Shown piece by piece: positions 28,386-63,344 of a stretch of DNA of 64,000 nucleotides (its first letter is position 1; each line of letters opens with the position of its first letter). The stretch spans positions 3,720,001-3,784,000 of the forward strand of contig JAXLNO010005841.1 of assembly GCA_038087875.1 (NCBI GenBank). The letters are read 5' to 3'. The notes below the pieces were generated by a model. It searched no databases and had not been told where the DNA came from. It saw only the letters and a list, made by a program, of their open reading frames with translations. Both the position numbers and the translations under genes were made by a program. This DNA comes from Malacoraja senta. Its lineage: Eukaryota.

Positions 28386-29584
28386 CTGGAGGGGGGAAGA
28401 GCGGGGAAGAGGGAGGAAGAACGGGAGGGAGGGAGTACGAGGGAGAGAGAGAGCAAGGCAGGGGAGAGGGAGAAAGAGAGGGAGGGAGGGAGGGAGTGAA
28501 GGTGGGCGAGAGGGAGGGAGAGAGACAGATAGCTTGTTCTCAGTACACAAAATGTAGAAATATATAGACTGGGATAGAGAGAGAAAGCGTCAGGGAGAGT
28601 GGGAAGCGAACAATAGAGCAAGAGTGCAGCCCATTGACCTGCAGCTGGCATTGGTAAACATTTAGAAGGCACGCAATCAGGCAGCGCTGTTGCCAAGACT
28701 GACTCGAACACCGTGTCCTGTTCCCAAACTCGCGGCGTTCGACCTTTCAGTGTCAATAGCTTATGACATCAATTGCAGGTGGAATTTTCCACCCAAGCAC
28801 AACACATTAAATTCCGAATTTATCAACTGTAGCTGTTCTTTTTATGTTTCGATTCCAGGAGAAGGTGAGATAAGAATTGAATCAAAAGCGTCACATAAAC
28901 CAATATCGTGAATCAAGAATCAAACGGATTTAACTGTCGTATGTACAGTCAATGGAAAAATGAAATTCGTTTTTGCAGCAAAACAGATCTACACGTTCTA
29001 CGCTAATAGATGATATCAATTAAGTAAACAACCAATAATGTAATTATCACAATACAAGTGAAATTAAAAAAACATCAGTGCAACCAAAGACTCCGACCAC
29101 CATTTGTGTGAAAACGTTCCCCCTCAGATTCCTATTAAATATCGATGTCCTGCAGCAGTTTGCTTATTTTTTTAGCTGTTGGCCGATCAGTGGTAACTAG
29201 TTTTGGTTTTTCATGTTGGAATTTCGTCTGAACTATCCAATTTGTTGAGGAAATAACGACGTGTTTTATGCCGACATTGCTGTAGATGTCGTAGAGTCAT
29301 ATAGTTCTACACATCGGGAACAATCACTTTGGTCCAGCTGGCTCTGTCTCTCTTTTGAGCCGAAGGATTCCCCTTTGTTTTGTACTGTTCTATGCTCTCT
29401 CATCAAACTAATTGGAGAGATACGGGCCAGGCACACCCTTTCAACCTGCAATGCCTGAGCCAAAAATGATGCCACGTTAAACAAATCTCCTCAGTCTGCT
29501 GAGCGGTTTCGGCTCTGCTCGACCGGTTGCTGTAAATAGAAAGTGGGGATAGTAGACCTGTTAAAATACCACGTTTTCTCCCAG

Positions 29585-29702
29585 CAGAAGATTCCACCGA
29601 ATCCACCCCAAGCCTCCCACTGAACATTCACTCGTATGAACGGGATATCGGTCTGTCTGCTGGGATCCTGCTTAATATCGGTCTACTTCTTTATGGTTTA
29701 AA
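29585..29702 (+). CDS. Stalk+transmembrane exon, copy 1 (AEDSTESTPSLPLNIHSYERDIGLSAGILLNIGLLLYGLK)
   Basis: Acceptor cacgttttctcccag, phase 1 matching the Ig exon donor, S/T/P-rich stalk, 18-aa hydrophobic helix, donor AA|gtaagg. Confidence 0.75.
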
Positions 29703-32700
29703 GTAAGGAATACCGACCAAAACGCAGAAGAGGCGCATGTTCCTCTGCTGTTTTTTCTTACGTGCAGCAGTTTCTTTAAATATTTTAAGTGGATAGATCA
29801 AGCAAGTGGCGGAACGGTGGGGCGGCGGTAGAGTTGCAGAATCACAGCATCAGAGACCCGGGTTCGATCCTGACTACAGGCGCTTGTCTGTATGGAGTTT
29901 GTACGTTCTTCCAGTGAACTGCGTGGGCTTTCTCCGGTAGCTCTGGTTTCCACCCACACTCCAAAGACGTACAGGTTTGTAGGTTAATTGGCTTGGTAAA
30001 GTTGTAAATTGTCCCTTATGTTTGTTGGATAGTATCAATGTGCGATTGCAGTTAGTGGTCGGTCGGGCTGTTGGCCGGACGGACGACCGACCGGTGGGTG
30101 CTGTGAGGGGTCGGTCGGACTGTCGGCCGGCCGGTGTGTGCAATGAGGGGTCGGTGGGCTGTCGGCCGGCAGGTGGGTGCAATGAGGCGTCGGTCGTGCT
30201 GTCGGCCGGCCGGTGGGTGCTGAGAGGGGTCGGTCGGTGTAGATTAACAATATGTAGCAATGTTACAAAATTTTGAGATTTAAAAAATAAAGTCTGCAAT
30301 TTATCCCATCAGATAGAGCATAAAAAGAAGTTTAATTTGACACCTAATTCACTTTCATATCTTCAGTATTAAAAAAGTTATGGCCATTTTCATACTCGGC
30401 AATTAGCATCTTGTTCCCTATTGCTTTTCCATTGATTTAACACAAAAGCTGTGATCGAGGACAGTCAAAAGCCCATAACTTTCTTAAAAATTAAGAGAAC
30501 TGGAAGAAATTTTCAGTTATTATAGATTGAAGCATTCAGAAACAAATATGAATGGAAAAATGAAATTCGTTTTTGCAGCAGCAAAACAGATCTACACGTT
30601 CCACGCTAATAGATGACATCAATTAAGTAAACAACCAATAATGTAACTATCACAATACAAGTGAAATAAAAAAAAACATCAGTGCAACCGAAGACTCCGA
30701 CCACCATATGTGTGAAAACGTCCCCCCTCAGATTCCTATTAAGTATTTCCCCTTGAACTTAAACCTATGCCGTCTTGTTCTCGATTCACCTACTCTGGAC
30801 AAACGACTATGTGTATTTACCCAATCTATACCACTCTTGAATTTATAGACCTCTAAAAGACCACCCCTCATTCTCGATGCGCGCCAGGGTATAGACTCCC
30901 AGTCTTCTCAACCTATCCCTGTAGCTCAGAGCCTCTTGTTCTGGCAATATCCTCGTAAATCTTCTCTGTACCCTTCCAGCTTGAAAACATCTTTCCAATA
31001 ACTTGGTGCCAAGAACTTAACACAATACTCTAAATGCGGTCTCACCAACGTTTTATACCACTTACGTTAGCTCTATCAATTTTCTACACATAAGGGGCAA
31101 TTTATGGTGGCCTATCAATTTTCTACACATAAGGGGCAATTTATGGTGGCCTATCAAAGCTGCAGTCTTTGGAATGCGGGAGGACACGGGAACTCCACGA
31201 ACAAGCACACGAGCGCGCAGGGACAACGTGCAAACGCCACGCAGACAGCACGATGCAAGGATCGAACCCAGGTCTTTGGCGCTGTGAGGCAGCAACTCGA
31301 TTCGCCTTGCCACCGTGCCGCAGTGTGAAAGAGCCTGATGGTTGTCATGGAAACAAGCCCTTTGGCCCAACCAGCCAACGCTGAACATAGATCACTCAGT
31401 CACAATATCTCTATGCTATTTGATGCTATGCACCTTCACGTCGCATTTTCTCGTGGAAAACCTACAGGTCCGGCACTTCCAACCACCCGAGGAGGCCAGA
31501 TGGTCGGAAAATCCGCCCGCCCCCCGCCCCCCATCCCCACATAGACACACATCATTCTTAATAGGCCCTGCAAGCTAGATGTCTTCATAAACCATGCAGG
31601 GTGAAGCAACACGTGACCAACCTTGGAGGAAATACCCAACCATATGTGCCGAGGGACCTTGAAGGCCAGTGATCAGATTTTCAAACTGACTGCACACTGG
31701 AGAGGCAATACTGAGATATTTGACAATGCAGACATGCTTTTCCAAAAGGCCAAAGTGGCTCACAAGTCATAAGGTCATGTGATAGAAATGGAATTAGGCC
31801 ATTCGGCCCATCAAGTCTCCGCCGTTCATTCGTGGCTGATCTATCTCTTCCTCCCAACTCTATTCTCCCGCCTTTTCCCCATGACCTCTGACACCTGTAC
31901 TAATTAAAAATATATCCTCTCTGCTTTAACAATATCAACTGTCTTGGCCTCTACATCTTTCTGTGGCAAAGAATTCCACAGATTCACCACCCCCTAATTA
32001 AAGAAATCTCTCATCTCCTTCCTAAAATAACTAAAATATGGTTCTGGGCGAACTGGAACCGCCTTGAGTACGCATTTGCAAGCGGACAAAATAGTACGAA
32101 TGTAGGATGGCAAGCAAAGTGCCCGCTTTTCACGAAGGGCAGTGATGAATACCCTGGTACATTACAGACATAATGAGCCAACATCAGTAAGAGACTGCAG
32201 ATGCTTGAATCTCTAGTAAAAGGCAAACAGCTGGAGGAACTCAGTGGGATAGGAAGAACGTGAGGAGAAAAATGGACCAGTCTGAAGAAGGGACCCACCC
32301 CTTCATGTCGTCTGTCCAATATCCTCCACGCATTCCGCCCGACCCGTTGAGCTCGTCTAGCAGTTTATCTTTTGCTCGAGACTTCATCATTTGCAGTCTC
32401 TTGCCTTCCCCAAATATCGATGTCCTGCAGCAGTTTGCTTATTTTTTTAGCTGTTGGCCGATCAGTGGTAACTAGTTTTGGTTTGTCATGTGGAAATTTC
32501 GTCTGAACTATCCAATTTGTTGAGGAGATAACGACGTGTTTTATGCCGACATTGCTGTAGATGTCGTAGAGTCATATTGTTCTACACATCGGGAACAGGC
32601 ACTTTGGTCCAGCTGGCTCTGGCTCCCTTTTGACCCGAAGGTTTCCGCTTTGTTTTGTACTGTTCTATGCTCTCTCATCAAACTGATTGGAGAGATACCG

Positions 32701-32859
32701 GCAAGGCACACCCTTTCAACCTGCAATGCCGGAGCCAAAAATGATGCCACGTTAAACAAATCTCCTCAGTCTGCTGAGCGGTTTCGGCTCTGCTCGACCG
32801 TTTGCTGTAAATAGAAAGTGGGGATAGTAGACCTGTTAAAATACCACGTTTTCTCCCAG

Positions 32860-32977
32860 CAGAAGATTCCACCGAATCCACCCCAAGCCTCCCAGTGAAC
32901 ATTCACTCCTATGAACGGGATATCGGTCTGTCTGCTGGGATCCTGCTTAATATCGGTCTACTTCTTTATGGTTTAAA
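32860..32977 (+). CDS. Stalk+transmembrane exon, copy 2 (L>V in stalk)
   Basis: Same 118-nt exon, intact splice sites and frame. Confidence 0.7.
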
Positions 32978-35900
32978 GTAAGGAATACCGACCAAAACGC
33001 AGAAGAGGCGCATGTTCCTCTGCTGTTTTTTCTTACGTGCAGCAGTTTCTTTAAATATTTAAAGTGGATAGATCAAGCAAGTGGCGGGACGGTGGGGCGA
33101 CGGTAGAGTTGCAGAATCACAGCATCAGAGACCCTGGTTCGATCCTGACTACGGGCGCTTGTCTGTATGGAGTTTGTACGTTCTTCCAGTGAACTGCGTG
33201 GGCTTTCTACGGTAGCTCTGGTTTCCACCCAAACTCCAAAGACGTACAGGTTTGTAGGATAATTGGCTTGGTAAAATTGTAAATTGTCCCTTATGTGTGT
33301 TGGATAGTATCAATGTGCGATTGCAGTTAGGGGTCGGTCGGGCTGTTGGCCGGACGGCCGACCGACCGGTGGGTGCTGTGAGGGGTCGGTCGGGCTGTCG
33401 GCCGGCAGGTGTGTGCAATGAGGGGTCGGTGGGCTGTCGGCCGGCAGGTGGGTGCAATGAGGCGTCGGTCGTGCTGTCGGCCGGCCGGTAGGTGCTGAGA
33501 GGGGTCGGCCGGTGTAGATTAACTATATGTAGCAATGTTACAAAATTTTGAGATTTAAAAAATCAAGTCTGCGATTTATCCCATCAGATAAAGCATAAAA
33601 AGAAGTTTAATTTGACACCAAATTCACTTTCATATCTTCAGTATTAAAAAGGTTATGCCCATTTTCATACTCGGAAATTAGCATCTTGTTCCCTATTGCT
33701 TTTCCATTGATTTAACACAGAAGCTGTGATCGAGGACAGTCAAAAGCCCATATCTTTCTTAAAAATTAAGAGAACTGAAAGAAATTTTCAGTTATTATAG
33801 ATTGAAGCATTCAGAAACAAATATGAAACAATCTTACTTAGATGACATGAAATTAAAGCATATAATTAGTTAGTTACCTTGCAGGTGGAATTTTCCATCC
33901 AAGCACAACACATTAAATTCCGAATTTGTCAACTGTAGCTGTTCTTTTTCTGTTTCGATTCCAGGAGAAGGTGGGATAAGAATTGAATCAAAAGCGTCAC
34001 ATAAACCAATATCGTGAATCAAGAATCAAACGGATTTAACTGTCGTATGTACAGTCAATGGAAAAATGAAATTCGTTTTTGCAGCAGCAAAACAGATCTA
34101 CACAGTTCTACGCTAATAGATGATATCAATTAAGTAAGCAACCAAAAATGTAATTATCACAATGCAAGTGAAATAAAAAAAACATCAGTGCAACCAAAGA
34201 CTCCGACCACCATTTGTGTGAAAACGTTCCCCCTCAGATTCCTATTAAGTATTTCCCCTTGAACTTAAGCCGCTGTCGTCTTGTTCTCGATTCACCTACT
34301 CTGGACAAGCGACTATGTGCATCTACCCAATCTATACCACTCTTGAATGTATGGACCTCTAAAAGACCACCCCTCATTCTCCTTGCGCGCCAGGGAATAG
34401 AATCCCAGTCATCTCAACCTATTCCTGTAGCTCAGAGCCTCTTGTTCTGGCAATATCCGCGTAAATCTTCTCTGTACCCTTCCACCTTGACAACATCTTT
34501 CCAATAACTTGGTGCCAAGAACTTAACACAATACTCTAAATGCGGTCTCACCAACGTGTTATACCACTTACGTTAGCTCTATCAATTTTCTACACATAAG
34601 GGGCAATTTATGGTGGCCTATCAAAGCTGCAGTCTTTGGAATGCGGGAGGACACGGGAACTCCACGAACAAGCGCACGAGGGCGCAGGGACAACGTGCAA
34701 ACTCCACACAGACAGCACAATGCAAGGATCGAACCCAGGTCTTTGGCGCTGTGAGGCAGCAACTCGACTCGCCTTGCCACCGTGCCGCAGTGTGAAATAG
34801 CCTGATGGTTGTCATGGAAACAAGCCCTTTGGCCCAACCAGCCAACGCTGAACATAGATCACTCAGTCATAATATTTCTATGCTATTTTATGCTATGCAC
34901 CTTCACGTCGCATTTTCTCGTGGAAAACCTACGGGTCCGGCACTTCCAACCACCCGAGGAGGCCAGATGGTCGGAAATTCCGCATGCCCCCCCGCCCCCC
35001 ATCCCCACATAGACACACATCATTCTTAATAGGCCCTGTAAGCTGGATGTCTTCAGAAACCATGCAGGGTGAAGCAACACGTGACCAACCTTGGAGGAAA
35101 TACCTAACCACATGTGCCGAGGGACCTTTAAGGCCAGTGATCAGATTTTCAAACTGACTGCACACTGGAGAGGCAATACTGAGATATTTGACAATGCAGA
35201 CATGCTTTTCCAAAAGGCTAAAGTGGCTCACAATGCATAAGGTCATGTGATAGAAATGGAAATAGGCCATTCGGCCCATGAAGTCTTCGCCGTTCATTCA
35301 TGGCTGATCTATCTCTTCCTCCCAACTACATTCTCCCGCCTTCTCCCCATGACCTCTGACACCTGTACTAATTAAAAATATATCCTCTCTGCCTTAACAA
35401 TATCAACTGTCTTGGCCTCTACATCTTTCTGTGGCAAAGAATTCCACAGATTCACCACCCCGTAATTAAAGAAATCTCTCATCTCCTTCCTAAAATAACT
35501 AAAATATGTTTCTGGGCGAACTTGAACCGCCTTGAGCACGCATTTGCAAGCGGACAAAATAGTACGAATGTAGGATGGCAAGCAAAGTGCCCGCTTTTCA
35601 CGAAGGGCAGTGATAAATACCCTGGTACATTACAGACATAATGAGCCGAACATCAGTAAGAGACTGCAGATGCTTGAATCTCTAGTAGGAGGCAAACTGC
35701 TGGAGGAACTCAGTGGGATAGGAAGAACGTGGGGAGAAAAATGGACCAGTCTGAAGAAGGGACCCACCCCTACATGTCATCTGTCCAATATCCTCCGCGC
35801 ATTCCGCCCGACCCGTTGAGTTCGTCTAGCAGTTTTGCTCGAGACTTCATCATTTGCAGTCTCTTGCCTTCCCCAAATATCGATGTCCTGCAGCAGTTTG

Positions 35901-36320
35901 CTTATTTTTTTAGCTGTTGGCCGATCAGTGGTAACTAGTTTTGGTTTGTCATGTGGAAATTTCGTCTGAACTATCCAATTTGTTGAGGAGATAACGACGT
36001 GTTTTATGCCGACATTGCTGTAGATGTCGTAGAGTCATATAGTTCTACACATCGGGAACAGGCACTTTGGTCCAGCTGGCTGTCTCTCTTTTGAGCCGAA
36101 GGATTCCGCTTTATTTTGTACTGTTCTATGCTCTCTCATCAAAGTGATTGGAGAGATATGGGCAAGGCACACCCTTTCAACCTGCAATGCCTGAGCCAAA
36201 AATGATGCCACGTTAAACAAATCTCCTCATTCTGGTGAGCGGTTTCGGCTCTGCTCGACCGGTTGCTGTAAATAGAAAGTGGGGATAGTAGACCTGTTGA
36301 AATACCACGTTTTCTCCCAG

Positions 36321-36438
36321 CTGAAGATTCCACCGAATCCACCCCAAGCCTCCCACTGAACATTCACTCGTATGAACGGGTTATCGGTCTGTCTGCTGGG
36401 ATCCTGCTTAATATCGGTCTACTTCTTTATGGTTTAAA
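36321..36438 (+). CDS. Stalk+transmembrane exon, copy 3 (D>V just before the TM)
   Basis: Same 118-nt exon, intact splice sites and frame. Confidence 0.7.
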
Positions 36439-39400
36439 GTAAGGAATACCGACCAAAACGCAGAAGAGGCGCATGTTCCTCTGCTGTTTTTTCTTACGTG
36501 CAGCCGTTTCTTTAAATATTTTAAGTGGATAGATCAAGCAAGTGGCGGGACGGTGGGGCGACGGTAGAGTTGCAGAATCACAGCATCAGAGACCCTGGTT
36601 CGATCCTGACTACGGGCGCTTGTCTGTATGGAGTTTGTACGTTCTTCCAGTGAACTGCGTGGGCTTTCTCCGGTAGCTCTGGTTTCCACCCACACTCCAA
36701 AGACGTACAGGTTTGTAGGTTAATTGGCTTGGTAAAATTGTAAATTGCCCCTTATGTGTGTTGGATAGTATCAATGTGCGATTGCAGTTAGGGGTCGGTC
36801 GGGCTGTTGGCCGGACGGCCGACCGACAGGTGGGTGCTGTGAGGGGTCGGCCGGGCTGTCGGCCGGCAGGTGTGTGCAATGAGGGGTCGGTGGGCTGTCG
36901 GCCGGCAGGTGGGTGCAATGAGGCGTCGGTCGTGCTGTCGGCCGGCCGGTAGGTGCTGAGAGGGGTCGGCCGGTGTAGATTAACTATATGTAGCAATGTT
37001 ACAAAATTTTGAGATTTAAAAAATCAAGTCTGCGATTTATCCCATCAGATAAAGCATAAAAAGAAGTTTAATTTGACACCAAATTCACTTTCATATCTTC
37101 AGTATTAAAAAAGTTATGCCCATTTTCATACTCGGAAATTAGCATCTTTTTCCCTATTGCTTTTCCATTGATTTAACACAGAAGCTGTGATCGAGGGCAG
37201 TCAAAAGCCCATAACTTTCTTAAAAATTAAGAGAACTGAAAGAAATTTTCAGTTATTATAGATTGAAGCATTCAGAAACAAATATGAAACAATCTTACTT
37301 AGATGACATGAAATTAAAGCATATAATTAGTTAGTTACCTTGCAGGTGGAATTTTCCATCCAAGCACAACACATTAAATTCCGAATTTGTCAACTGTAGC
37401 TGTTCTTTTTCTGTTTCGATTCCAGGAGAAGGTGGGATAAGAATTGAATCAAAAGCGTCACATAAACCAATATCGTGAATCAAGAATCAAACGGATTTAA
37501 CTGTCGTATGTACAGTCAATGGAAAAATGAAATTCGTTTTTGCAGCAGCAAAACAGATCTACACAGTTCTACGCTAATAGATGATATCAATTAAGTAAGC
37601 AACCAAAAATGTAATTATCACAATGCAAGTGAAATAAAAAAAACATCAGTGCAACCAAAGACTCCGACCACCATTTGTGTGAAAACGTTCCCCCTCAGAT
37701 TTCTATTAAGTATTTCCCCTTGAACTTAAGCCGCTGTCGTCTTGTTCTCGATTCACCTACTCTGGACAAGCGACTATGTGCATCTACCAAATCTATACCA
37801 CTCTTGAATGTATGGACCTCTAAAAGACCACCCCTCATTCTCCATGCGCGCCAGGGAATAGAATCCCAGTCTTCTCAACCTATCCCTGTAGCTCAGAGCC
37901 TCTTGTTCTGGCAATATCCGCGTAAATCTTCTCTGTACCCTTCCACCTTGACAACATCTTTCCAATAACTTGGTGCCAAGAACTTAACACAATACTCTAA
38001 ATGCGGTCTCACCAACGTGTTATACCACTTACGTTAGCTCTATCAATTTTCTACACATAAGGGGCAATTTATGGTGGCCTATCAAAGCTGCAGTCTTTGG
38101 AATGCGGGAGGACACGGGAACTCCACGAACAAGCGCACGAGGGCGCAGGGACAACGTGCAAACTCCACACAGACAGCACAATGCAAGGATCGAACCCAGG
38201 TCTTTGGCGCTGTGAGGCAGCAACTCGACTCGCCTTGCCACCGTGCCGCAGTGTGAAATAGCCTGATGGTTGTCATGGAAACAAGCCCTTTGGCCCAACC
38301 AGCCAACGCTGAACATAGATCACTCAGTCATAATATTTCTATGCTATTTTATGCTATGCACCTTCACGTCGCATTTTCTCGTGGAAAACCTACGGGTCCG
38401 GCACTTCCAACCACCCGAGGAGGCCAGATGGTCGGAAATTCCGCATGCCCCCCCGCCCCCCATCCCCACATAGACACACATCATTCTTAATAGGCCCTGT
38501 AAGCTGGATGTCTTCAGAAACCATGCAGGGTGAAGCAACACGTGACCAACCTTGGAGGAAATACCTAACCACATGTGCCGAGGGACCCTTAAGGCCAGTG
38601 ATCAGATTTTCAAACTGACTGCACACTAGACAGGCAATACTGAGATATTTGACAATGCAGACATGCTTTTCCAAAAGGCTATAGTGGCTCACAATGCATA
38701 AGGTCATGTGATAGAAATGGAAATAGGCCATTCGGCCCATCAAGTCTTCGCCGTTCATTCATGGCTGATCTATCTCTTCCTCCCAACTACATTCTCCCGC
38801 CTTCTCCCCATGACCTCTGACACCTGTACTAATTAAAAATATATCCTCTCTGCCTTAACAATATCAACTGTCTTGGCCTCTACATCTTTCTGTGGCAAAG
38901 AATTCCACAGATTCACCACCCCGTAATTAAAGAAATCTCTCATCTCCTTCCTAAAATAACTAAAATATGATTCTGGGCGAACTTGAACCGCCTTGAGCAC
39001 GCATTTGCAAGCGGACAAAATAGTACGAATGTAGGATGGCAAGCAAAGTGCCCGCTTTTCACGAAGGGCAGTGATAAATACCCTGGTACATTACAGACAT
39101 AATGAGCCGAACATCAGTAAGAGACTGCAGATGCTTGAATCTCTAGTAGGAGGCAAACTGCTGGAGGAACTCAGTGGGATAGGAAGAACGTGGGGAGAAA
39201 AATGGACCAGTCTGAAGAAGGGACCCACCCCTACATGTCGTCTGTCCAATATCCTCCGCGCATTCCGCCCGACCCGTTGAGTTCGTCTAGCAGTTTTGCT
39301 CGAGACTTCATCATTTGCAGTCTCTTGCCTTCCCCAAATATCGATGTCCTGCAGCAGTTTGCTTATTTTTTTAGCTGTTGGCCGATCAGTGGTAACTAGT

Positions 39401-39783
39401 TTTGGTTTGTCATGTGGAAATTTCGTCTGAACTATCCAATTTGTTGAGGAGATAACGACGTGATTTATGCCGACATTGCTGTAGATGTCGTAGAGTCATA
39501 TAGTTCTACACATCGCGAACAGGCACTTTGGTCCAGCTGGCTCTGTCTCTCTTTTGAGCCGAAGGATTCCGCTTTATTTTGTACTGTTCTATGCTCTCTC
39601 ATCAAATTGATTGGAGAGATATGGGCCAGGCACACCCTTTCAACCTGCAATGCCTGAGCCAAAAATAATGCCACGTTATACAAATCTCCTCAGTCTGGTG
39701 AACGGTTTCGGCTCTGGTCGACCGGTTGCTGTAAATAGAAAGTGGGGATAGTAGACCTGTTGAAATACCACGTTTTCTCCCAG

Positions 39784-39901
39784 CAGAAGATTCCACCGAA
39801 TCCACCCCATGCCTCCCACTGAACATTCACTCGTATGAACGGGATATCGGTCTGTCTGCTGGGATCCTGCTTAATATCGGTCTACTTCTTTATGGTTTAC
39901 A
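39784..39901 (+). CDS. Stalk+transmembrane exon, copy 4 (S>C in stalk, K>Q after the TM)
   Basis: Same 118-nt exon, intact splice sites and frame. Confidence 0.7.
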
Positions 39902-40413
39902 GTAAGGAATACCGACCAAAACGCAGAAGAGGCGCATGTTCCTCTGCTGTTTTTTCTTACGTGCAGCAGTTTCTTTAAATATTTTAAGTGGATAGATCAA
40001 GCAAGTGGCGGAACGGTGGGGCGGCGGTAGAGTTGCAGAATCACAGCATCGGAGACCCTGGTTCGATCCTGACTACGGGCGCTTGTCTGTATGGAGTTTG
40101 TACGTTCTTCCAGAGAACTGCGTGGGCTTTCTCCGGTAGCTCTGGTTTCCACCCACACTCCAAAGACGTACAGGTTTGTAGGTTAATTGGCTTGGTAAGA
40201 TTGTAAATTGTCCCTTATTTGTGTTGGATAGTATCAATGTGCGATTGCAGTTAGGGGTCGGTCGGGCTGTTGGCCGGACGGCCGACCGACCGGTGGGTGC
40301 TGTGAGGGGTCGGTCGGGCTGTCGGCCGGCAGGTGGGTGCAATGAGGCGTCGGTCGAGCTGTCGGCCGGCCGGTGGTTGCTGAGAGGGGTCGGTCGGTGT
40401 AGATTAACTATAT

Positions 40414-41450
40414 GTAGCAACGTTACAAAATTTTGAGATTTAAAAAATAAAATCTGCAATTTATCCCATCAGATAAAGTATAAAAAGAAGTTTAATTTGA
40501 CACCTAATTCACTTTCATATCTTCAGTATTAAAAAGGTTATGGCCATTTTCATACTCGGAAATTAGCATCTTGTTCCCTCTTGCTTTTCCATTGATTTAA
40601 CACAAAAGCTGTGATCGAGGACAGTCAAAAGCCCATAACTTTCTTAAAAATTAAGAGAACTGAAATAAATTTTCAGTTATTATAAATTGAAGCATTCAGA
40701 AACAAATATGAAACAATCTTACTTAGATGACATGAAAAGAAAGCATATAATTAGTTAGTTACCTAATTGTAGCTAATTACAAAATTCAATTACTAGATCT
40801 AAATATCTATCAATTTCTTAAGAATAGATTAACATTTATAAATAGCCTAAGTGTCCAAATAACATTCACACAAGAATTCACAATATAACATAATTTTTAA
40901 ATTTCATTGTCATGGATTTACAGGCCAAATGGAAGGAATTGAATGTTTAATACCTGTAAATTAATGGTCATTTAAATCATTTTACGAGTGAGGTTTTCTG
41001 GAACACGATCATTTGGAACGTTGATTTGCGGTGAATTTAACCCCATATCGGCATGAAAAATTCTGCCGTTAGTTGGGGGAAAAGAATCACCGTTTCGCAT
41101 TTAAAAAAAAATGAATTAAAGGCTTCTTAAGAAGCACTTTTATACATTAAAATAAACTACTTTCCTTTACCTGCCCCGTGTGCGAAAATCGTCCCCGTTG
41201 TCGGCGTTGTTTCGAAGCTGATTTTAAAATAACTCCAGCGCTGACATTGTCCATTTAATAAAAATAAAAAATACACAAAACGCCCGTAGGAACGATTTTT
41301 CAGCAAACGCTTGTACTCCAACGAAATATAATACAGGACAAGGTAGGAGAAACCCGCGTTTTAACCCCCCCGTCAAAGGCGCCAAAATCGCGCACACGGC
41401 CAGTGGCAGAATTGCAGCGCCGCTGACGGTAAGTATTGTAACATATCTAC
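40414..41450. mobile_element. Non-autonomous TIR DNA transposon (1037 bp); truncated copies end array units 1-3
   Basis: Left end GTAGCAACGTTACAAAA versus right-end reverse complement GTAGATATGTTACAATA (13/17). TATAT direct repeats at 40409-40413 and 41451-41455. Confidence 0.65.
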
Positions 41451-46287: not shown

Positions 46288-47732
46288 CAATCATTCTGGG
46301 GAGGGGCACATTGTAGTCTAACGTGTCAGGTGATCACTTGGCCTTCTGCTCGAAGCGAGCATAGACATCTTAGGGTCGCACTATCGCCAATGATGACACC
46401 TGACCTTGCATTGCAGCCAATTATCATATTCAGACCTTGCCAGATTATCCGTGTGTCCGAGTGATTACACTAGGACTCAGGTTTGTCCCGGTATTGTCTC
46501 TTGGCATCCTTGATGGCTACGCGGAGATCAAAGCGGGCCTTCATGTCCCGCTAGGGATCCTTTGACTTTTTCGCAGAAAACCGGACCTTAACCTGTGAAT
46601 GCACCTCACGATCGGCACAAGAAGCTGAGGTTACTCAGCGGGTCAGACAGCACCCCTGGGGAAAAGGAATAAGCGACGTTTCATGTCCAGACCTTTCTTC
46701 GGACCTCGCGGTTCATCCGTGGTTTCCGGATGGGGAAGACTTTTATTTACTTCGACGGCGCACAGCCGCCCACGCACTCGCTGGTGAAATCAATCACGGC
46801 ATTGTTGTCCTCATTCAGGTTCGCTGCGGAATCCCTGAATATGAACCTGGGGAACTTAGATGGAATTAGGGTGAACTTTAAATTTTCGATCATATGTACT
46901 TCGCCGCCATAAATGTATACCGTGCTCGCGGTGTCTGTATTTCTGTGCTACCTGAAGTCAATCACAATATCCTTTGTCTTTGGTGACGTTGAGTGAGGGG
47001 TTGTTGGCTGTGCACCAGGTTACGAGGTTCCCAATTTATCTCAGCATGGTTTGATTGCACTCGTGTGTGGTCTATTTTAATATAGTTTAGTTTAAGGATA
47101 CAGCGCGGATACAGGCCCTTCGGCCCACCGAGTCGGCACCGATCATCAATCCTCGCACAATAAAACAAGGGACAATTCTAAACTCATACCAAGTAAAAAA
47201 AAACAATCAAATTAACCTGCAAACCTGTAAGTCTTTGGAGTGTGTGAGGAAACCGAAGATCTGGGAGAAAACCCTCCAGGTCATGGGAAGAACGTGCAAA
47301 CTCCGTACAGACAGCACCCGGAGTCAGGATGGAACCCGGGTCCCTGTCGCTGAAAAAGCTGTAAGGCGGCAACTCTACCGATGCGCCACCGTGCCGCAAC
47401 TCTACAAGGATAGGACGCAAACAAATGTATCTCTGTATCTCGGCACACGGGATAACAATAGCTAATATGAATGTATTAATAAGTTTATTGGCTAAGTATT
47501 CACATACAAGGAACTTGCCTTGTTGCTCCGCCCACAAGTGACAACATGACATACAGTGAAAGTTAAGAATGAAACATTAATAATAAAACATTATTGATTA
47601 AACATGTGAAGTAAATCAAATACCAGAGCGAAAGGAGGCAACAGATTTTTGGTTATTGAGTAGAGCTACTACTCGTGGAAAAAAACTGTTTATATGTCTG
47701 GCTGTGACAGCTTTGATAGTCCGGAGTCGCTC

Positions 47733-48719
47733 CTAAGCCTGGCCGCCCATGCTTGCAGGCGGAATTACTCCATCGTCAGCCAGCAGGGAAGTGTTCCATT
47801 TGCAACATAATTTGTGTAGCGCATCGCGAAGCTTGCATACACCGAACACGATGACCATGGGATTCAAAACTGCGTAGCAGAAGGCATCGTAAAGATACGA
47901 AAACTCAAACAACTTCTCCATCATCAATGAACATTGCGATGATTGGGATATGGCACACAACAAAAATATAATTCTCGCAAAGATAAAGGCAAGAAAAAGC
48001 AGATAAAGTGAAACAACCAATGCTATTATGCGCAAGTGATGATCCCCCTTCTTGGGACGTTTAACTTTGGCGGCGAGCTGCTGAGACGATCGCCGATGTC
48101 TCCATAAGACGGAGATGAGGTAAATACAAGAATTGGACATCCATAGAGCGGGGAGCGCAGTTGCAAGGATTAGGCTCATGTAGATGTTTAATTCTTCAGT
48201 TGCTTCGGGGTTCATTTCCTGCGACCCGTTTGTCCATCCAAAATGATAAGATCCGTTCAGGTAATGGCAGGTTAACGCTGCATTCTCGATGTAGCAATCC
48301 AACGCTCCCAGAGCGCAGCTGAACAACGCCGTCGCACCGACCCAGAGGAAAACCTTGCCGCTGATCACTTGAGCTAGTTTTTTGGCGTTGGGCCGATGGA
48401 CACTAACGATTTTCAGGCAGTAGAAGAAACAGAGGAGAGCGCTGACCCAAAAGCTGAGGGAATGGGAGAGCGCGAGGAAGGACATGGCGACCTTTTGCTG
48501 GATCTCGCAGTAGTTGTGAATGAAGTCCACGACCATTGTGAACACCGCCACGAGGATGGTGGTAACATTGGCGACGGCCAGAGCGCTGACGATGACCTCC
48601 GCGGGAGGCGCGCTGACTTGACACAACCCTCGCCACAAAGTCAGGAGGATGAAGACGTTGGTAATCAATCCGAAAATGCTGAAGAATCCGACAACAGCTG
48701 ACTTCACCCACAATTCCAT
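47733..48719 (-). CDS. tas2r: Intronless 7TM receptor of the T2R (bitter taste) family, 328 aa, intact
   Basis: Seven hydrophobic segments. T2R hallmarks: TM1 GxxxNxFI, TM3 SFW...FFYCLKI, ECL2 N-glycosylation sequons (NGS twice), TM5 LISVLWRH, C-terminal FGVCKLRDAL. Splice acceptor tttctacag 4 nt upstream of the ATG. Family-level call only; ortholog unknown. Confidence 0.85.
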   Translation of the reverse strand: MELWVKSAVVGFFSIFGLITNVFILLTLWRGLCQVSAPPAEVIVSALAVANVTTILVAVFTMVVDFIHNYCEIQQKVAMSFLALSHSLSFWVSALLCFFYCLKIVSVHRPNAKKLAQVISGKVFLWVGATALFSCALGALDCYIENAALTCHYLNGSYHFGWTNGSQEMNPEATEELNIYMSLILATALPALWMSNSCIYLISVLWRHRRSSQQLAAKVKRPKKGDHHLRIIALVVSLYLLFLAFIFARIIFLLCAISQSSQCSLMMEKLFEFSYLYDAFCYAVLNPMVIVFGVCKLRDALHKLCCKWNTSLLADDGVIPPASMGGQA

Positions 48720-48959
48720 TTTCCTGTAGAAATAAATTTAACCAAGGCTATAATAGATAGATCCGTGCCCAGAAAATCTCACGTTATTGAAAACCACATT
48801 GCAAAAACTATTGTGTCTGTTTGAAATATTTGTTAACAGCTCGAAATATTAAGACTAGCAATATCAAAGTTATAATTCTTGCAGGATTTCGAAATGCGGA
48901 CAGTTTAATAGCCATAATTTTATGGTTATTACTGCGTTCTCACAATGCCTAATGCTAGG

Positions 48960-49420
48960 TTACATCGTTTAATAGAGTATCGTTGCGCAAATGTCCCTAA
49001 ACAAATCCTGTACTCTCAATTGAAGGAAGGTCAGCGAGCCCCCTGCGGGCCAAAGAAACGCTTCAAGCACAACATCAAGAACAGTCTGAAGAAATTCCAA
49101 ACCACATCGAGCAACTGGGAGCACATTGCACTGGACAGGCGCTCCTGTAGGAAATCCGTGCTGGAAGGAGTTGCACGTCATGAAATGGAACTACGCCGTG
49201 TCGCAAAGACAAAGCGAAAGCACCGTAAGGACAGAGAGAAGGGGCATCAACGAATACCAACCACCGCCAGTCTCCACTGCCCACGTTGCACCGTGTGTGG
49301 ATTGCGGATCGGCCTCTGCAGGCATCTGCAGACCCTCAAGTAGACGACACTATGGAGGGGAGAGGACAGTCATGCTCGTTTAGAATGATCGCCGATGATG
49401 TGCAAGTGTCAATCGAACTG
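48960..49420 (+). mobile_element. RTE-clade LINE 3' fragment
   Basis: ORF 48945-49343: PKQILYSQLKEGQR..GPKKRFKHNIKNSLK, W..IALDR. Confidence 0.8.
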
Positions 49421-51608
49421 ATTGACAATCGCTTTGAAACTGACAACTTTGCTGTAAGGAAACACAGGTGTCAGATTACTGCGCCGCGGTTACATGCTGA
49501 CATTTATCGCAGTGGATTGTTTTTCCTCAAGACAGCTGTTCTTCTGCTTGCCAGTTTCACAAGTAGCTTTTTCGTGGAATTCTCGTTTCCGATCGAATTC
49601 AAGTTTAAACAAATTTAGTCCACAGTATAAAAATAGGAATCTAATTAAAACACAACATGCGGGCTTAAATCAGTGGTTCAGGCTGCAGCTGTGAAAGTTA
49701 AGATTGTAGCAGTGTAAGTAGACAGAAAAGGGAATGGGGGCGGGTGGATTCTGGTAAGGGAGATAGGGACAAAATGCTGGAGTAACTCAGCAGGTCAGGC
49801 AGCAACTTTGGAAATAATAAATATGTGACGTTTGGGGTCGAGATCCTTTTTCATAACCAGGTAAGGGATGTTAATTGGCAGGTGGGTGGAGAAGGACGGA
49901 GATTAAAATGAGACAAAGGTAGGGAGAGAGGAGGAGCACAATGTGTAGCAGAGAGGGGGGGGGTTGGGGACCGTACGTGTGTAATGTGACCGCGTGGGGG
50001 AGGTGGAGGGGTTGGCGGGGGGGGGGGTAGGCTTGGGAGGGCAGGATATTTGTAGAATGGTTGCGCATGGGCGACATTGTTCAAACGATTGGGCTGGAAG
50101 AAAACCATGCGCAACCATGCTTTTATCTAGTCTGCGTGTGGCCTCACTCTGGCAATGGAGGAGATCCCTAATTCATCGATAGTGGCGTTACAGAAATAAG
50201 CGTTATAACATATTCAGGCAGATTTGTACGTGATGGTAGGTCAGAGAGAGTCGTCGAATTTCCCAGAGTCAGCGGGCATAGTTTCAGACTCCTGCCAAGT
50301 CCATCTGGGAAGGCGATTGGGGAGAGATTTAATGACCACGTTTTAATCAGGGGACGTGCATGGTAATTTTACCGTTCAGTTTCAGTTCACGTACAGTTTA
50401 AGTTTATGGCCATGTGCAGAGAGGTAGAGTAAAAAAGCTTTTCTTGCGTGCTAACCAGTCAGCGGACAGACAATACATGATTACAATCGAGCCTTTTACA
50501 GTGTATATATATATAAGAGAATACCATTTAGTGAATGGAAAATCCTGTGAAGTCCGATCAAAGATAGTCCGAGGGTCAACAATGAAGTAGATATAACAGT
50601 TCAGGAGTGCTCTCTAGTTGCGGTAGGGTGATTCAGTTGCCTGATAACAGCTGGGAAGAAACTGTTCCTGAATCGGGAGGTGTGTGTTTTCACGCATCTA
50701 CACCTTTTGAATTATCGGCGAGGGGAGAAGAGGGAGTGACCAGGATGCGACTCGTCCGTGATAATGTTGCCGAGGCAGCGTGAGGTATAGATGGAGTGAA
50801 TGTAATGGAGGTTGGTTTGTGTAATGGCCTGGGCTACGTCCAAAATGCTCTGCAATTACCTCCGGTCTTAGGTGGAGCTGTTTTTCCCAAGCTGTAAGGC
50901 ATCGGGATAAAAAAAAATGTGTTTAATGACACACAAATCTTGGATTTCAGGACATTGAGATCCGGGGACCGTGGTTAAAAATTTGGCACAAGTATCAAAT
51001 ATGTTCAAAGGTAGCGCAATGTCGCGGCAGGGAGGGCGACTACAACAGAGCGCGGTCCGAACCTGACGTCGGCTACGTTCTTTCCGGAGTTTACATGTTC
51101 TCCCCGTGACTACGCGGAGATCTTCCGGGTGCTCGTGTTTCCTCCTACATTCCAAAAAGTCCCGCAGTTAATTGGGGTTAATTTGACCTCCATAAATGAC
51201 CACGAGTGTGTGAGCCGAAACGGAATTAGGCCACTCGTCAGAGAAGTTATAGGAAAATGAAGTGGAAGTGATTATTTATATGAGGTTCACTGTAAGTCAC
51301 CATGGACACGTTGGACAGAATGGCCTCTTTCCACGTTGTACATTAATATGAATGAAGGGAAGCAAGATGACCAGCACGTTTTATTTGTTCTTGTAAAGAA
51401 ACTAATCGCATCGTTCATGATTGCGTACACTTTTGTAGATCACCCCTCAGCCTCCGGCGCACCAAATAATAATGTCAAGCCTGCCCAATCTCTCTCTGTA
51501 GCTCAGGCCCCCGGGTCCTGGCAACACTCTCGTAAATCGTCTCTGTAGCCTTTCCAGATTAATACTTATTTGGAATTGATTGTTTTCGCAGAACGGCCTT
51601 CTGTTTCC

Positions 51609-53290
51609 TATAAAGACTAATAATGGTGATAGACAAAGCAAGCGCCAATAAAATAGATCAATAGATCCATGACGAGATTTCCCATTGTCCCCGCACGTTC
51701 TCCACAACTTCATCCTAACACTTCCACGCGAGCACTCCTTTATTAAAACGTTCAGTTTGACTTCCATGGGATCTAGTTATTTCTCAATTTTCTGTTTAAC
51801 TTCCGGACAACGAATGCTGTTCAGTCGAAGTTAATCTATTTCCCCCTACATTTATGAGACGAACTATCAGCATGACAACATTATTGAAACGAAAAACGAA
51901 AGTTTAAGCTGATAATATGAAATGCAATGTTTACCTCAATCTGGAGATTCCCAGTTATTACATTATAAACGATGTGCTTTTCCGCAATCAATCAATTGAG
52001 CCGACTATATTACGGAGGTTAACAGCAGCAGCATTTATATGACGACATCAAACCTAATACGCACAGTTACTAAGGAAGCGATAATTTGAATATTTCTGGA
52101 ACAGTCGTCATTTGAGCAGTCAAATTATACATGGAGTTGAACCTTGCAGAATATTTGCTTGTTTATGACCGTGATATCGTCTTGCTTACTGAAGCTGGAA
52201 TATTTCCTTACACTTCACTGTTGATAGGAAGGGAATGCATTCGTACAATAGTTCCAGGATACATTTTCTTCAACAGGTCTTTATTGATCATCTACTTCTT
52301 CTTTCGTGTGGCGTGCACAGCCTAAAGTTGTTGGACAACTTGTTCTATTTGATCTTCCGTGTTTGTGCACGTCGAGTTGATTGCATTAGACGAAACAGGA
52401 CGGACCACGTGAAGGTTGCAATCTTCCACCCCTTTATTGATCATAAGATCATACGACATATGAGCGGAATTAGGCAATTCGGACCATCGAGTAAACTCCG
52501 CAATTCGATCATGGCATATCTATTTTTTCCTCGCAACCCCATTCTCAAGCGTTCTCCTCATAAACTTGAATACCCTTACTTTTCAAGAATCTGTCAAATT
52601 CCGTCATAAACATACTGAATTACTTGGCCTCCACAGGCGTCTGTGGGAAGACATCCCACAGATTCTTCTCCTACTGGCTGAATAAATTCCTCCTCATCCC
52701 CATTTAAAATATACACAATTTTATTCTGAGGCTATGGCCTCTAGTCCTCGACTCTCCCAATACTGCAATCATCCTCTCCACGTCCACTCTGTCGCAGCCT
52801 TTCTTTATTCGGTACATTTCTATGAGATCCTCCCTCATCCTTCTAAAACTACAGAGAGTTCGGGCACAGAGCCACCTGTTCGATTTATCTAGGTATTAAA
52901 GCAATAGACAAATGGAAGCTCAAGATGAAACTGGTAGATTGAATTTAGGTATTCTGGATGGAGGTAAGGCATTTGTAGTTTCAAAAGGCATCGGATGATA
53001 TTTTAACAACACATTCAATGAAATGACTTACCCTTTCGTTAACTCGCATTCGAATTATCTTTTTTGAAGTTTGTCCATCTGCCCTTCCGTAATGTTATCA
53101 TTTGTTTCATATTTCTATTTTATGTCGTGCAATAACGAGGCAATTTTTGATGTATACAAATCAATGAGATTGTTCAGACAAATGCTCCTGAATGCAAGGG
53201 ATACTTTATGATCCACTTCATCTTTCCGATTACCCTATTGATCTATTTTATTGGCGCTTGCTTTGTCTATCACCATTATTAGTCTTTATA
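51609..53290. repeat. Perfect 56-bp inverted repeat pair (51609-51664 and 53235-53290); candidate TIR element
   Basis: tataaagactaataatggtgatagacaaagcaagcgccaataaaatagatcaatag and its exact reverse complement. TA-rich outer ends. Confidence 0.7.
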
Positions 53291-56739: not shown

Positions 56740-57960
56740 TCCAGAGGTACAGAGGATGGAGAAGAAAGGGGAGGGGTGACAGAAACTGGGAGAGTGGGTG
56801 AAGGTGCCGGAGTTGAAGGGATTACAGAGACGCGGTGATCGGTGTGGGGGGGCTGCGGGGTGGGGGTTACAGAGGCGGGAAGATGGGGTGTAGGGGCCGA
56901 GGGGAGCGGTGTTACCGAGACGGGGACAGTGGAGTAGGGGCCGGAGGGGAGGAAGTTACAGAGACGGGGGGGGGGGAGGGGGTGTAGCGACCGGAGGGGA
57001 CGGGGTTACCTAGAAGGGGAGAGGGGGTGTAGGGGCCAGAGCGTTGGGGGTTACAGAGACGGGGAGAGGGTGTAGGGGCCGAAGGGGAGGTGGTTACTGG
57101 GACGGTGAGCGGGGGTGTAGGGGAGGGGAGGGCGTTACAGGGACCTGGAGCCGGTGTGACGGGGAGCGGAGGGTGTTACAGAGACGGGGCGACGGGGTGT
57201 AGGAGCCGAAGGGGTGGGGGTCACTCTAACTAACTAAATTATACTCATTTTGTTGATAGTTTCCCATTTGTACAGAGAGTGGGAGGCGGAGACCTGGCGC
57301 GGCCGTCGGGGACACGGGCTCAGTTTGTCGCGATGGTGCTCTCGATCCAGGAGACGTAGTTGCAGACGCCAGTGTAGACGCCGCGATCGCCCCACGCGAT
57401 ACATCCGTAACTCCACGACATCACTGCCTGGAGCACTCTGTTACAAACCTCTGGCCCGCCAGCATTACCCTGTCACAAGGGCAGATGTGAGTGGAGGTTA
57501 ATTGGATTCGGTAAAGATTGTAAGTTGTCCCCAGTGTGTGTGTGCGTGTAGGATAGTGCATGTACGAATCGTCTCGACGGCAGCGACTCGGTGGGCCGAA
57601 TGGCCTGTTTCCGCGCTGTATCTCCAAACGAAACCAGTGTGTGAACGGGTGATCGTAGCTCGGCAGCGACTCGGTGGGCCGAATGGCCCGTTTCCGCGCT
57701 CTAGTTGGGGGCGAGGGGGGGGGAGGGAAGGGGAGGTGATGGGAGGTGGTTACAGAGACGGGAGAGAGGGTAAAGGGACCGGAAGGTAGAGAGTTGAAGA
57801 GACGGGCAGCGACGGTGTAGGGGCCGGAAGGGAGGGGGTTACACATACGGGGAGAGGGGGTGTAGGGGCCGGAGGCGAGCGGTTTACATAGACGGTGAAA
57901 GGGGTGGGGCGGGAGGGGAGCGCAGGGGACGGGGGGAGAAGAGGGGAGGAGGAGATGTGT
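56740..57960. repeat. G-rich ~40-bp minisatellite (ttacagagacggggagagggtgtaggggcc...) around protease exon 5; also at 62570-62920 and inverted at 63085-63180
   Basis: Direct reading of recurring units. Confidence 0.8.
57320..57469 (-). pseudogene. Trypsin/kallikrein-like paralog B, last exon, catalytic Ser replaced by Ala
   Basis: Open 150-nt phase-0 exon: [49 protein letters not shown]. Confidence 0.88.
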
Positions 57961-58030
57961 GGGGAGGGGAGCGGAGGGGAGGGAGGGGAGGGGAGGGGAG
58001 CGAAGAGGAGGGGGAGCGGGAGGTCTGTAT

Positions 58031-58170
58031 CTGGCAGGGGTGACTGCCTCTGTCGCCGAGGCACAACACTTTGTCAGTAATCCATCTCTGTCCAGAACCA
58101 CGACAGTCCGCGTCATTCCGAATCGGAGCGTCAAAGCGCTGACGCTAGTGGCTGCAAAACGATATTCGCC
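58031..58170 (-). pseudogene. Trypsin/kallikrein-like paralog B, penultimate exon, disabled
   Basis: *RQRFDAPIRNDADCRGSGQRWITDKVLCLGDRGSHPCQ aligns to [14 protein letters not shown]...MMC...RDSCQ. In-frame TAG at 58145-58147. Donor is AT instead of GT. Confidence 0.75.
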
Positions 58171-58174
58171 CTAC

Positions 58175-59830
58175 TCTCTCTCTCCCTCTCTCTCACCCCC
58201 TCTCTTCCCCTCTATTGTGCCCCTTCCTTCTCTCCCTCTCTCCCTCTTTCCCCCTCTCTCTTCCTCCTCTCTTTCCCTTCTCTATCCCCTTCTCTCCCGC
58301 TTCCATCTCTTCTCCTCACTCCCCTGTTCCACCTCGTCTCTCACCCTCTCTCTCCCCCCCCTCTCCCTCTCGCTCCTTCCTTTCTACCCACCCACCCCCA
58401 TCTCTGCCACTCTTCCCCCTCTCATCTTCTCCTTCTACCGCCCTCTCCCAATCGCTCTCTCACTCCCTCCTTCCCACCTCTCGTCTTCCTCCTGACACTC
58501 TCTCTCCCATCCCTATCTCCCTTCCCCTCTCCCCTTTTTTCTGCACTCTCTATCTCTCCACCAACCCCCTCTCCCTCTCGTCCCTCTCCCTGCCCATCCC
58601 TTCATAGCGCTGCGGTGTAAGCTCCCCAGAAAAATATGAGGTGCCGTTCCTCCAATGTGTGCTGGGCCTCACTCTGACAATGGAGGAGGCCCAGGACAGA
58701 AGGTCAAATTGGGAATGAAAGGGGGAGTTGAAGAGCTGAGGGACCGGGAGTCAGGTAGGACTGAGCGGAGGTATTCTTATCGTATTAGTTTAATGCTTGA
58801 GTTTAGAGTTTGTGTTTTGTTTAAATTAATTTTATTTCATTTGTGTTTCAGTTAAGTTTTGTCTCTGTAATCGCCTCCCCACCCTATCTTTTCCCCCCTT
58901 CCTCCCCTGGCTCCCCAACCTCCCACCACCCTTTCCTCTCCACCCTTCCTCCCTCTCCCCATATTCTCTCGCTAGTCACGCCCTCCCTCCCTCCCTCCCT
59001 CCCTCCGTCCCTCCCTCCCTCCCTCCCTCCCTCCCTCCCTCCCTCCCTCCCTCCCTCCCTCCCTCCGTCCCTCCCAACTTCCCTCCCCGACCTCGCCCAG
59101 CGGTATACAAGGGCTTGAAAGAGCACAGGTGCGGCCGCTCGCGAAAGGCATCGGCGCCCCGACCCCACACAACCCTTCTGCTCTTCGTCTTCCTCCGACT
59201 CGGACTCCCCCCGGGTTCCAACCTACACCCTTCACCCCTTTATTTCCCTCCCCGTTTCTCTTCCCCCTTCCTCTGTCTACCCATCCTGTCCCCGGCCCTC
59301 TCCCTCTCCTCCTCTATCACCCTCCTCTCTCTCCCATTCTCTCCCTCCCCTTATCTCCCCCTTCTTTATCTATCCCCACTATTTTTCACCCACTATCTCC
59401 TCTCCCCCTCTATCTCCCCTTGTCTCCCTCTCCCCTTCTCCCTCTACTACCTCCCCTAATCTCTCTACACCTCTTTCTCCCCTCCCCCTCTTTCTGTCCC
59501 CCATCCCTCTCTCCACCTCTTGTCTCAACCCCTCCGCTCCCCCCCTCCTCTCTCACCCTCCCCTCTCCCCTCCTTCTTTCCCCTTTCTCTACCTCGCTTC
59601 TCGCTCTCTTCACCATCCCCGTCTCACCCCCCCGTTGTCAGTGACCTCTTTCCGTCTCTGCAACCCCCTCCTCCCCCGGCCCTTACACTCCCTCTTCCCG
59701 TCTCTGTAATATTCTCCTCTCCCTCTCCTCTCCCCCTCCTCTCACCCTCCTCTCCCCCTCCACTCCCCCTCCCATCCTCACCTCTCCTCACCTCTCCCCT
59801 TCCCTCGCCTTCTCCCCCCTCGGTACCCCC
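58175..59830. repeat. CT-rich low-complexity region including (CCCT)n at ~58980-59070
   Basis: Direct reading. Confidence 0.9.
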
Positions 59831-59924
59831 TTCAGCGCTGAAACAGGCCTTTCGACCCATCGAGTGGGTATCGAATTTGAGCTCATAGTTCATAGTTTGA
59901 GTTTAGAGTGTGAAGACAAATGTA

Positions 59925-61959: not shown

Positions 61960-62109
61960 TCAGTTCGCAGCGATGGTGCTGTGGATCCAGTAGAAGTAAT
62001 GACAGACGCGAGTGTAGACGCCGGGACGGTCAATGACGTCACACCCGCATCCCCACGATACTATTCACTGGAGCACTCCGTTACACACCACTGTCCCGCC
62101 AGAATCAGC
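61960..62109 (-). pseudogene. Trypsin/kallikrein-like paralog A, last exon with a premature stop
   Basis: [51 protein letters not shown] at 62065-62067. Confidence 0.9.
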
Positions 62110-62925
62110 CTACCACAAGGCAGACGTGAGAGGAAGTTAATTAGTCATAGAGGGATACCGCGTGGAAAAAGGCCCTTCGGCCCAACGTGCCCACACCGGG
62201 CAACATGCCCCATCTACACTAGTCCCACCTGGCCGCGTTTGGCGCATATCCCTCCAAACCGGCCCTGTCAAGGTACCTGTCTAAATGTATCTTAAACGGT
62301 GGGATGGTCGCTGCCTCAACTACCTCATCCGGCAGCTCGTTCCATACACCCAGCACCCTCTGTGTGGAAAAGTTACCCCTCAGGTTCCTATTAAATCCTC
62401 CCCCCTGCACCTTGAACTTATGTCCCCTGGTCCTCGATTCCCGTACTCTGGGCAAGAGAATCTGTGCGCCTACCCGATCTAAGCTCTCCCTATAGCTCAC
62501 ACCCTCTGGTCCTGGCAACATCTTTGGTGGGCCGAAGGACCTGTTTCCGCGGTCGGGTGAACGAGAGGGGAGAAAGAAAGGGAAGGGGAGAGAGTTACAG
62601 AGACGGGGAGAGGGGGCGTAGGGGCAGGAGGGCTGGTGGTTACAGAGACGGGGGAGGGGGTGTAGGTGCCGGAGGTGTGGTGGTTACAGAGACGTGGGGG
62701 GCGGGTGGTTTGTAGGGGCCGGACAGGGGAGGGGGGTACATAGACGTGGAGAAGCGGTGTGGGGGCCGTAGGGGAGGTGGGTGCAGAGACGTGGGGAGGG
62801 GATATATGGGCCGTAGAGGAGGGGGGTACAGAGACGGTGGATGGGATATACGGGCCGTAGAGCAGGGGGTTACTGAGACGGGGAGCGGAGGATTTGACAG
62901 CGACGCGGAGAGAGGGGGGCTGTAC

Positions 62926-63059
62926 CTGGCAGGAGTCGCGCCCTCCCTCCTTGTAGTCGACACACATCATGTTGTAAGTGATCATTCCCGGGTAGGTGCC
63001 ATGACAGTCCACTTCACTCATAACCGGGGCGTCCAAACACTGAAGGTCGCCGCGGAACG
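62926..63059 (-). pseudogene. Trypsin/kallikrein-like paralog A, penultimate exon (intact)
   Basis: Phase 1/0 exon: [44 protein letters not shown], with the Asp189-type S1 pocket. Canonical AG/GT. Confidence 0.92.
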
Positions 63060-63344
63060 CTTGTGGGGTAAATGTGAGAGAAACCCTCTCCCCGTTTCCG
63101 TAACCCCCTACCCTACGGTCACTACACCTTCTCTCCCCATCTCTGTAACCCCCTCCCCTACGGTCACTACACCTCCTCTCCCCAATCTTTCCTTCTTTCT
63201 CACCTTCCTTTCCCATTCTCTGTTCCTTCCCTTCCCCTCCCCTCCCTCACTCTTCACTTCCTCTCCTCAAATTCTCTATCTCTCTCCTCTTCTCGCCTCC
63301 ACCCTGTAGATTAACCCCTATTAATCCATACGATTTATAATCTC

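Follow-up and report, generated by a model that had tools for sequence, protein, structure and literature searches.

The window analysed here, a stretch of 64,000 nucleotides, carries on its minus strand a complete coding sequence of the bitter taste receptor (T2R) family, together with an acceptor-like motif directly upstream of its start codon, a conserved non-coding block further 5′, and the two 3′-most exons of a gene for a trypsin-like serine protease (Table 1). The open reading frame of the receptor comprises 987 nt and encodes, according to the ORF listing, 328 amino acids followed by a stop codon. The first in-frame stop 5′ of its ATG lies seven codons away, and the ATG itself is embedded in a good Kozak context (AGGAAAATGG; A at −3, G at +4). 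The preliminary description of this DNA had reported an uninterrupted frame with four T2R motifs, all of which are indeed present (NVFI at residues 21-24, FYCLKI at 99-104, LISVLWRH at 201-208 and GVCKL at 293-297). With a Pfam TAS2R E-value of 3.7e-17 and a match that covers profile positions 12-300 of 303, the frame is far beyond what chance would produce. The exact protein has been absent from every collection searched, by exact look-up as well as by protein search, and in this sense the receptor gene is unannotated.

Table 1. Coordinates of the receptor gene, its candidate 5′ elements and the surrounding features within the window.
Feature	Position	Strand	Basis
T2R1-clade bitter taste receptor CDS, complete, single-exon	47733..48719	minus	ORF, Pfam, tree, dN/dS, AF2, Foldseek
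Acceptor-like motif (T-rich tract + CAG), candidate 3′ splice site of a 5′-UTR intron	48720..48735	minus	sequence
Single-copy conserved non-coding block, candidate promoter or non-coding first exon	52014..52232	minus	blastn vs Pristis, read depth
Trypsin-like serine protease gene, last two exons	61963-62064 (terminal) and ~62930-63070	minus	Pfam Trypsin on ~62930-63070
3.46-kb unit in tandem, inside an Ig-type (Siglec-like) gene	29137-40764		
Young LINE, two copies	4767-6247 and 21404-22886		RVT_1 reverse transcriptase
Very high-copy SINE-like repeat adjoining the receptor stop codon	47091-47730		
Further SINE-like repeats	49652-49848, 50440-50833, 52213-52400		
Pro/Ser/Leu-rich low-complexity ORFs, probably non-coding	57400-59900 and 62500-63300	both	

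Surroundings and 5′ region of the receptor gene

The trypsin-like neighbour that had been named beforehand has been recovered, with its penultimate exon matching the Pfam Trypsin model. The GDSGGP motif of the catalytic serine has been found nowhere in the window, and for this reason the protease gene may be broken, non-catalytic or continued beyond the window. The Ig-type (Siglec-like) gene harbours about 3.4 tandem copies of its 3.46-kb unit, which are 95-98% identical. Matches of these units to the downstream flank of the T2R gene of the sawfish Pristis pectinata looked colinear and have been rejected as synteny, as they consist of SINE/LINE fragments in both orientations. The low-complexity ORFs are simple-sequence DNA. 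The two LINE copies share 92% identity with each other; relatives of their reverse transcriptase at 93-96% occur in the ENA metagenome assembly ERZ21788738, where they probably represent host contamination from a close relative, and the best named matches come from Hypanus sabinus (74-76%), Callorhinchus (72%) and Pristis (61%). The genome accordingly belongs to neither Hypanus nor Pristis. Repeats make up most of the 3 kb upstream of the receptor, and the very high-copy SINE-like repeats are, at the 31-mer level, common to DNA runs of at least nine organisms. Neither Rfam nor tRNA scanning has yielded a match in the window.

A comparison with the 10 kb on either side of the Pristis T2R, a region in which no other gene has been called, has revealed a single conserved non-coding block in colinear position, all other matches being to transposons. 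Positions 52232-52062 of the window align with Pristis L001:134-297 at 73.4% identity over 173 nt (blastn, E = 2e-22), and with respect to the T2R gene the block is oriented alike in both genomes, at a distance to the ATG of 3.3 kb in the window vs 9.7 kb in Pristis. By read depth the block is single-copy and the DNA around it high-copy repeat. It lacks a triplet pattern, its indels are not divisible by three, and at its 3′ edge the two genomes have GT(A/G)ATAT in common (the window G at position 52013). At the other end of the presumptive intron, a 5′-UTR splice acceptor had been claimed in the preliminary description. The motif as such is there, reading ttatttctacag and then GAAA-ATG, with four nucleotides between the CAG and the ATG. 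Taken alone it is weak evidence of a splice site, because only 8 of 12 positions are pyrimidines and a loose acceptor pattern, which this motif narrowly fails, recurs about three times per kb per strand in the window. In Pristis, a T-rich tract with TAG ends 1 nt before the ATG, and its TTTATTT aligns with the window; the Pristis gene model spans the CDS alone. Judged from these sequence features, the upstream block may be a promoter, or a non-coding first exon that would be spliced to the acceptor at the ATG and would give the gene a two-exon structure. Shared with the sawfish, it is a candidate for a regulatory element or for a 5′ exon of a taste-receptor gene.

Family and clade of the receptor

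An N-glycosylation site in the second extracellular loop (ECL2) and a FYxxKI motif in transmembrane helix (TM) 3 are hallmarks of the T2R family. In hmmscan, the Pfam TAS2R model (PF05296) has matched residues 9-306 with 62.8 bits, compared to a curated cut-off of 22.2, and the V1R model has given no match to the receptor protein at E-values up to 10. The profile comparison of TAS2R with V1R that had been proposed for this protein has therefore ended with an end-to-end match on the TAS2R side and none on the V1R side. With phmmer, run exhaustively against 1.84 billion cluster representatives, 15 proteins have been retrieved at E ≤ 0.001, the best match being the Pristis pectinata T2R (65%) and most of the remaining ones lying at about 25% identity (24-33%). 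All ten matches looked up by name have turned out to be annotated T2Rs, from coelacanth, lungfish, gar, caecilian, axolotl and newt; one 411-aa match (P0003) has been dropped as a low-complexity repeat protein. Word-indexed protein searches, using the receptor alone and a three-sequence profile as queries, have added the T2R of the catshark Scyliorhinus canicula (47%) and, beyond the Pristis and Scyliorhinus proteins, nothing else. Among PDB sequences, neither phmmer nor the profile of the three elasmobranch proteins has detected a TAS2R, so that the link to human TAS2Rs is provided only by the Pfam model and by the fold search described below.

In the alignment of 16 T2R sequences, W91, L96, Y100, I104, N155, L205 and L238 are invariant. 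The ECL2 sequon N155-G-S is found in 16 of 16 aligned T2Rs and coincides in position with the conserved T2R glycosylation site, and all three elasmobranch proteins share C142 and C151. Based on this alignment, AlphaFold2 has produced a model (pLDDT 81.3, pTM 0.79) with seven long transmembrane helices, a helix 8 and a β-hairpin in ECL2, in agreement with the seven-helix architecture that had been predicted from the letters. The best PDB matches of the model in Foldseek are TAS2R46 (7xp6), TAS2R4 (9m8l) and TAS2R14, at 18-20% identity and TM-scores of about 0.65-0.78. The receptor accordingly combines what defines a T2R, i.e., a score above the HMM threshold, a single-exon seven-helix protein of about 300 residues, the ECL2 sequon together with FYCLKI, and the lack of a V1R match.

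Since T2R and V1R/ORA receptors are sister families (PMC10691231), a protein of the ORA/V1R olfactory receptors, or of another GPCR family, might merely resemble a T2R. The N-P of the receptor's TM7 is a feature of class A receptors, many of which score just below the TAS2Rs in Foldseek and nearly equal them by fold. This N-P is, however, unconserved in the catshark protein, which has N-A at the same place; every sequence relative that bears a name is a T2R, the profile search lists TAS2R and no V1R model, and published trees rooted with ORA as outgroup place the Pristis and Scyliorhinus relatives within T2R (PMC10691231). We consider membership in any family other than T2R to be extremely improbable.

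A maximum-likelihood tree of 16 proteins, confined to T2Rs and sampling coelacanth, lungfish, gar and amphibians besides the three elasmobranch sequences, has united the receptor with the Pristis and Scyliorhinus T2Rs in a clade with 100/100 support. The stem of this elasmobranch clade amounts to 2.5 changes per column, and the path from the receptor measures 0.53 to Pristis, its nearest neighbour, and 1.22 to the catshark. Of the phylogeny that the preliminary description had asked for, the grouping with elasmobranch T2Rs has thus been obtained, in a tree of T2Rs only; the clustering with ORA/V1R that it had put forward as the contrary outcome has not appeared, as judged from the HMM search, in which no V1R/ORA match exists. 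The two accessions from Pristis and Scyliorhinus are the cartilaginous-fish T2Rs named in the supplement of Policarpo et al. 2024 (PMC10869828), and in published trees all bony T2Rs have the elasmobranch clade as their sister group, ORA lying outside of both (PMC10691231). The earlier reading of the frame as a member of the recently recognised elasmobranch T2R lineage is borne out by this clade and by the TAS2R profile. The receptor belongs to a known kind, the T2R1 lineage published in 2023-24, and not to a new type. Taking all this together, we regard it as very probable that the frame is an apparently functional member of the T2R1 lineage of elasmobranchs, sister of all bony-vertebrate T2Rs, and that the genome in which it resides is, given a sawfish as nearest relative, that of a batoid (a ray or skate-like fish).

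Constraint, integrity and copy number

In the survey of Behrens et al. 2023, a singular T2R1 has been found in 12 of 17 cartilaginous fishes (PMC10691231). It is intact in nine sharks and one sawfish, Pristis being the only batoid with an intact gene, a pseudogene in two of two skates, and absent from chimaeras, Lamniformes and Squaliformes (PMC10691231). Policarpo et al. 2024 have reported one T2R in Pristis and no complete T2R in the skate Amblyraja radiata (PMC10869828), and a 2024 review gives a range of zero to one for cartilaginous fishes (PMC11641376). The codon alignment of the receptor with the Pristis CDS (L001:10001-10999) has yielded pN 0.205 and pS 0.580, corresponding to dN 0.240, dS 1.115 and a dN/dS of 0.215, with dS near saturation; this ratio shows long-term purifying selection.

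More recent changes have been followed in public runs of two organisms, here called A and B, over positions 46500-52400. In these runs the gene is covered to the same depth as unique intergenic DNA, which identifies them as DNA and not RNA. The contig of organism A is 99.2% identical to the window and differs at exactly eight positions, six of them transversions, all of which fall within 47952-48381 (430 nt of the CDS). The differences from organism A comprise E145D, L154Q, N196T, K218N and L234M and create no stop codon, which gives five replacement and three silent changes on the window branch and an ω of about 0.5, calculated from tiny counts. Organism B, whose contig shares 93.5% identity with the window across 1,218 nt, has the letter of organism A at eight of eight sites, and Pristis agrees at three of the five replaced residues; the window letters are taken as derived because the state of organism A is shared by organism B and often by Pristis. 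The eight clustered changes may reflect an allelic difference, a difference between sister species or gene conversion from a paralogue. In both organisms the CDS is free of indels, the sole indel of the organism B contig lying outside it. We have dropped the scarcity of indels as a test of constraint, as the non-coding comparison offers only about two independent indel events and hence low power.

Regarding the condition of the gene, the frame could belong to a pseudogene of very recent origin or to a relic that is no longer expressed, still open in a gene already in disuse. The literature speaks of a ‘process of pseudogenization’ in rays and has found pseudogenes in both skates examined (PMC10691231), and no complete T2R is listed for Amblyraja radiata (PMC10869828); in view of these records, constraint may have been lost recently in this lineage. 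In the same direction point the five replacement and three silent changes on the window branch, the outcome of the RNA search, which has brought up two runs that proved to be DNA and no RNA run containing the receptor gene, and the transposon insertions, which abut the receptor stop codon and occupy the upstream 3 kb. Against disuse stand the open frame of 328 codons with its favourable start context, the low overall dN/dS relative to Pristis, the retention of all family-invariant residues of the 16-sequence alignment, the indel-free CDS of two related taxa, and the conservation of the non-coding block upstream with the sawfish. On balance, a relic of this kind appears unlikely to us, and we favour an intact and constrained gene.

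A different question is whether the receptor stands alone. At least three intact T2R1-derived paralogues, the receptor among them, could form a cluster specific to this lineage that extends across some 290 kb, with Ig-type (Siglec-like) and trypsin-like genes in between. That the region is prone to duplication can be seen from the 3.46-kb tandem repeat in the neighbouring Ig-type gene, and the packing of eight window-specific changes into 430 nt of the CDS is the pattern expected from gene conversion by a paralogue. On the other hand, tblastn of the receptor protein has detected no second T2R copy or fragment within the window, the surveys of 17 and 10 species have recorded duplication in none (PMC10691231, PMC10869828), and in organisms A and B a single contig covers the gene at a likeness of at least 90%, at a depth equal to that of the unique flanks. 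The latter result fits a single copy as well as old, diverged paralogues or collapsed identical copies. We give the cluster somewhat less than an even chance. Were it to exist, it would represent the first duplication or expansion of T2Rs in any cartilaginous fish, in a group where the gene has been thought to be dying; the residue differences clustered in ECL2, TM5 and TM6 would be a hint that the ligand range has diversified, the picture of a singular receptor would need revision, and the locus would become a natural experiment on the earliest expansion of the T2R family.

Proposed function and relation to known receptors

By homology with the deorphanised T2R1 proteins of catshark and bamboo shark, the receptor would be a class T seven-helix GPCR made in taste-bud cells of the oral epithelium, where it may bind small xenobiotic bitter compounds as well as endogenous steroids or bile acids. 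Its binding pocket would be formed by the helices and by a disulfide-braced, N-glycosylated second extracellular loop, and signalling would presumably proceed via a gustducin-like G protein to a rise of intracellular calcium. Both shark receptors are activated by amarogentin, denatonium, colchicine, erythromycin, famotidine and taurolithocholic acid, and the catshark T2R1 additionally by arbutin, chloroquine, progesterone and resveratrol (PMC10691231); the catshark gene is enriched in taste tissue (PMC10691231).

The T2R1 of sharks and rays is employed as the nearest living stand-in for the bitter receptor of the vertebrate ancestor, a use that presupposes a single-copy gene without any duplication. 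Sampling of batoids has so far been thin, with an intact gene from one sawfish and pseudogenes from two skates, and an added intact batoid T2R1 refines the map of gene loss and provides a second batoid protein for the comparison of ligands. Should the genome be that of a skate, its intact T2R1 under constraint contradicts the idea that skates at large are losing the gene.

Among the known receptors, the T2R of Pristis pectinata (P0001, named ‘taste receptor type 2 member 143’) is closest, with 64% amino acid and 74% nucleotide identity over the full length. Like the receptor, it is encoded by a single coding exon and has the same ECL2 cysteines and the same N-glycosylation site; it differs by its length of 332 aa vs 328 aa, a divergent C-terminal tail and a two-residue difference in intracellular loop 3. 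The T2R1 of Scyliorhinus canicula (P0002, ‘taste receptor type 2 member 13-like’) is 47% identical, with conservation of TM3 (FYCLKIVSVHRP), ECL2 and the CKLRD at the junction of TM7 and helix 8, whereas the catshark protein, at 345 aa, has a longer tail and carries N-A in TM7 in place of N-P. Ligands have been established for T2R1 proteins of sharks only. To the T2Rs of bony vertebrates, including human TAS2R46, TAS2R14 and TAS2R4, the receptor is related by the shared Pfam TAS2R domain, the seven-helix class T fold and the invariant residues, yet it shares only 18-24% identity with them and is separated from them in the tree by a long stem.
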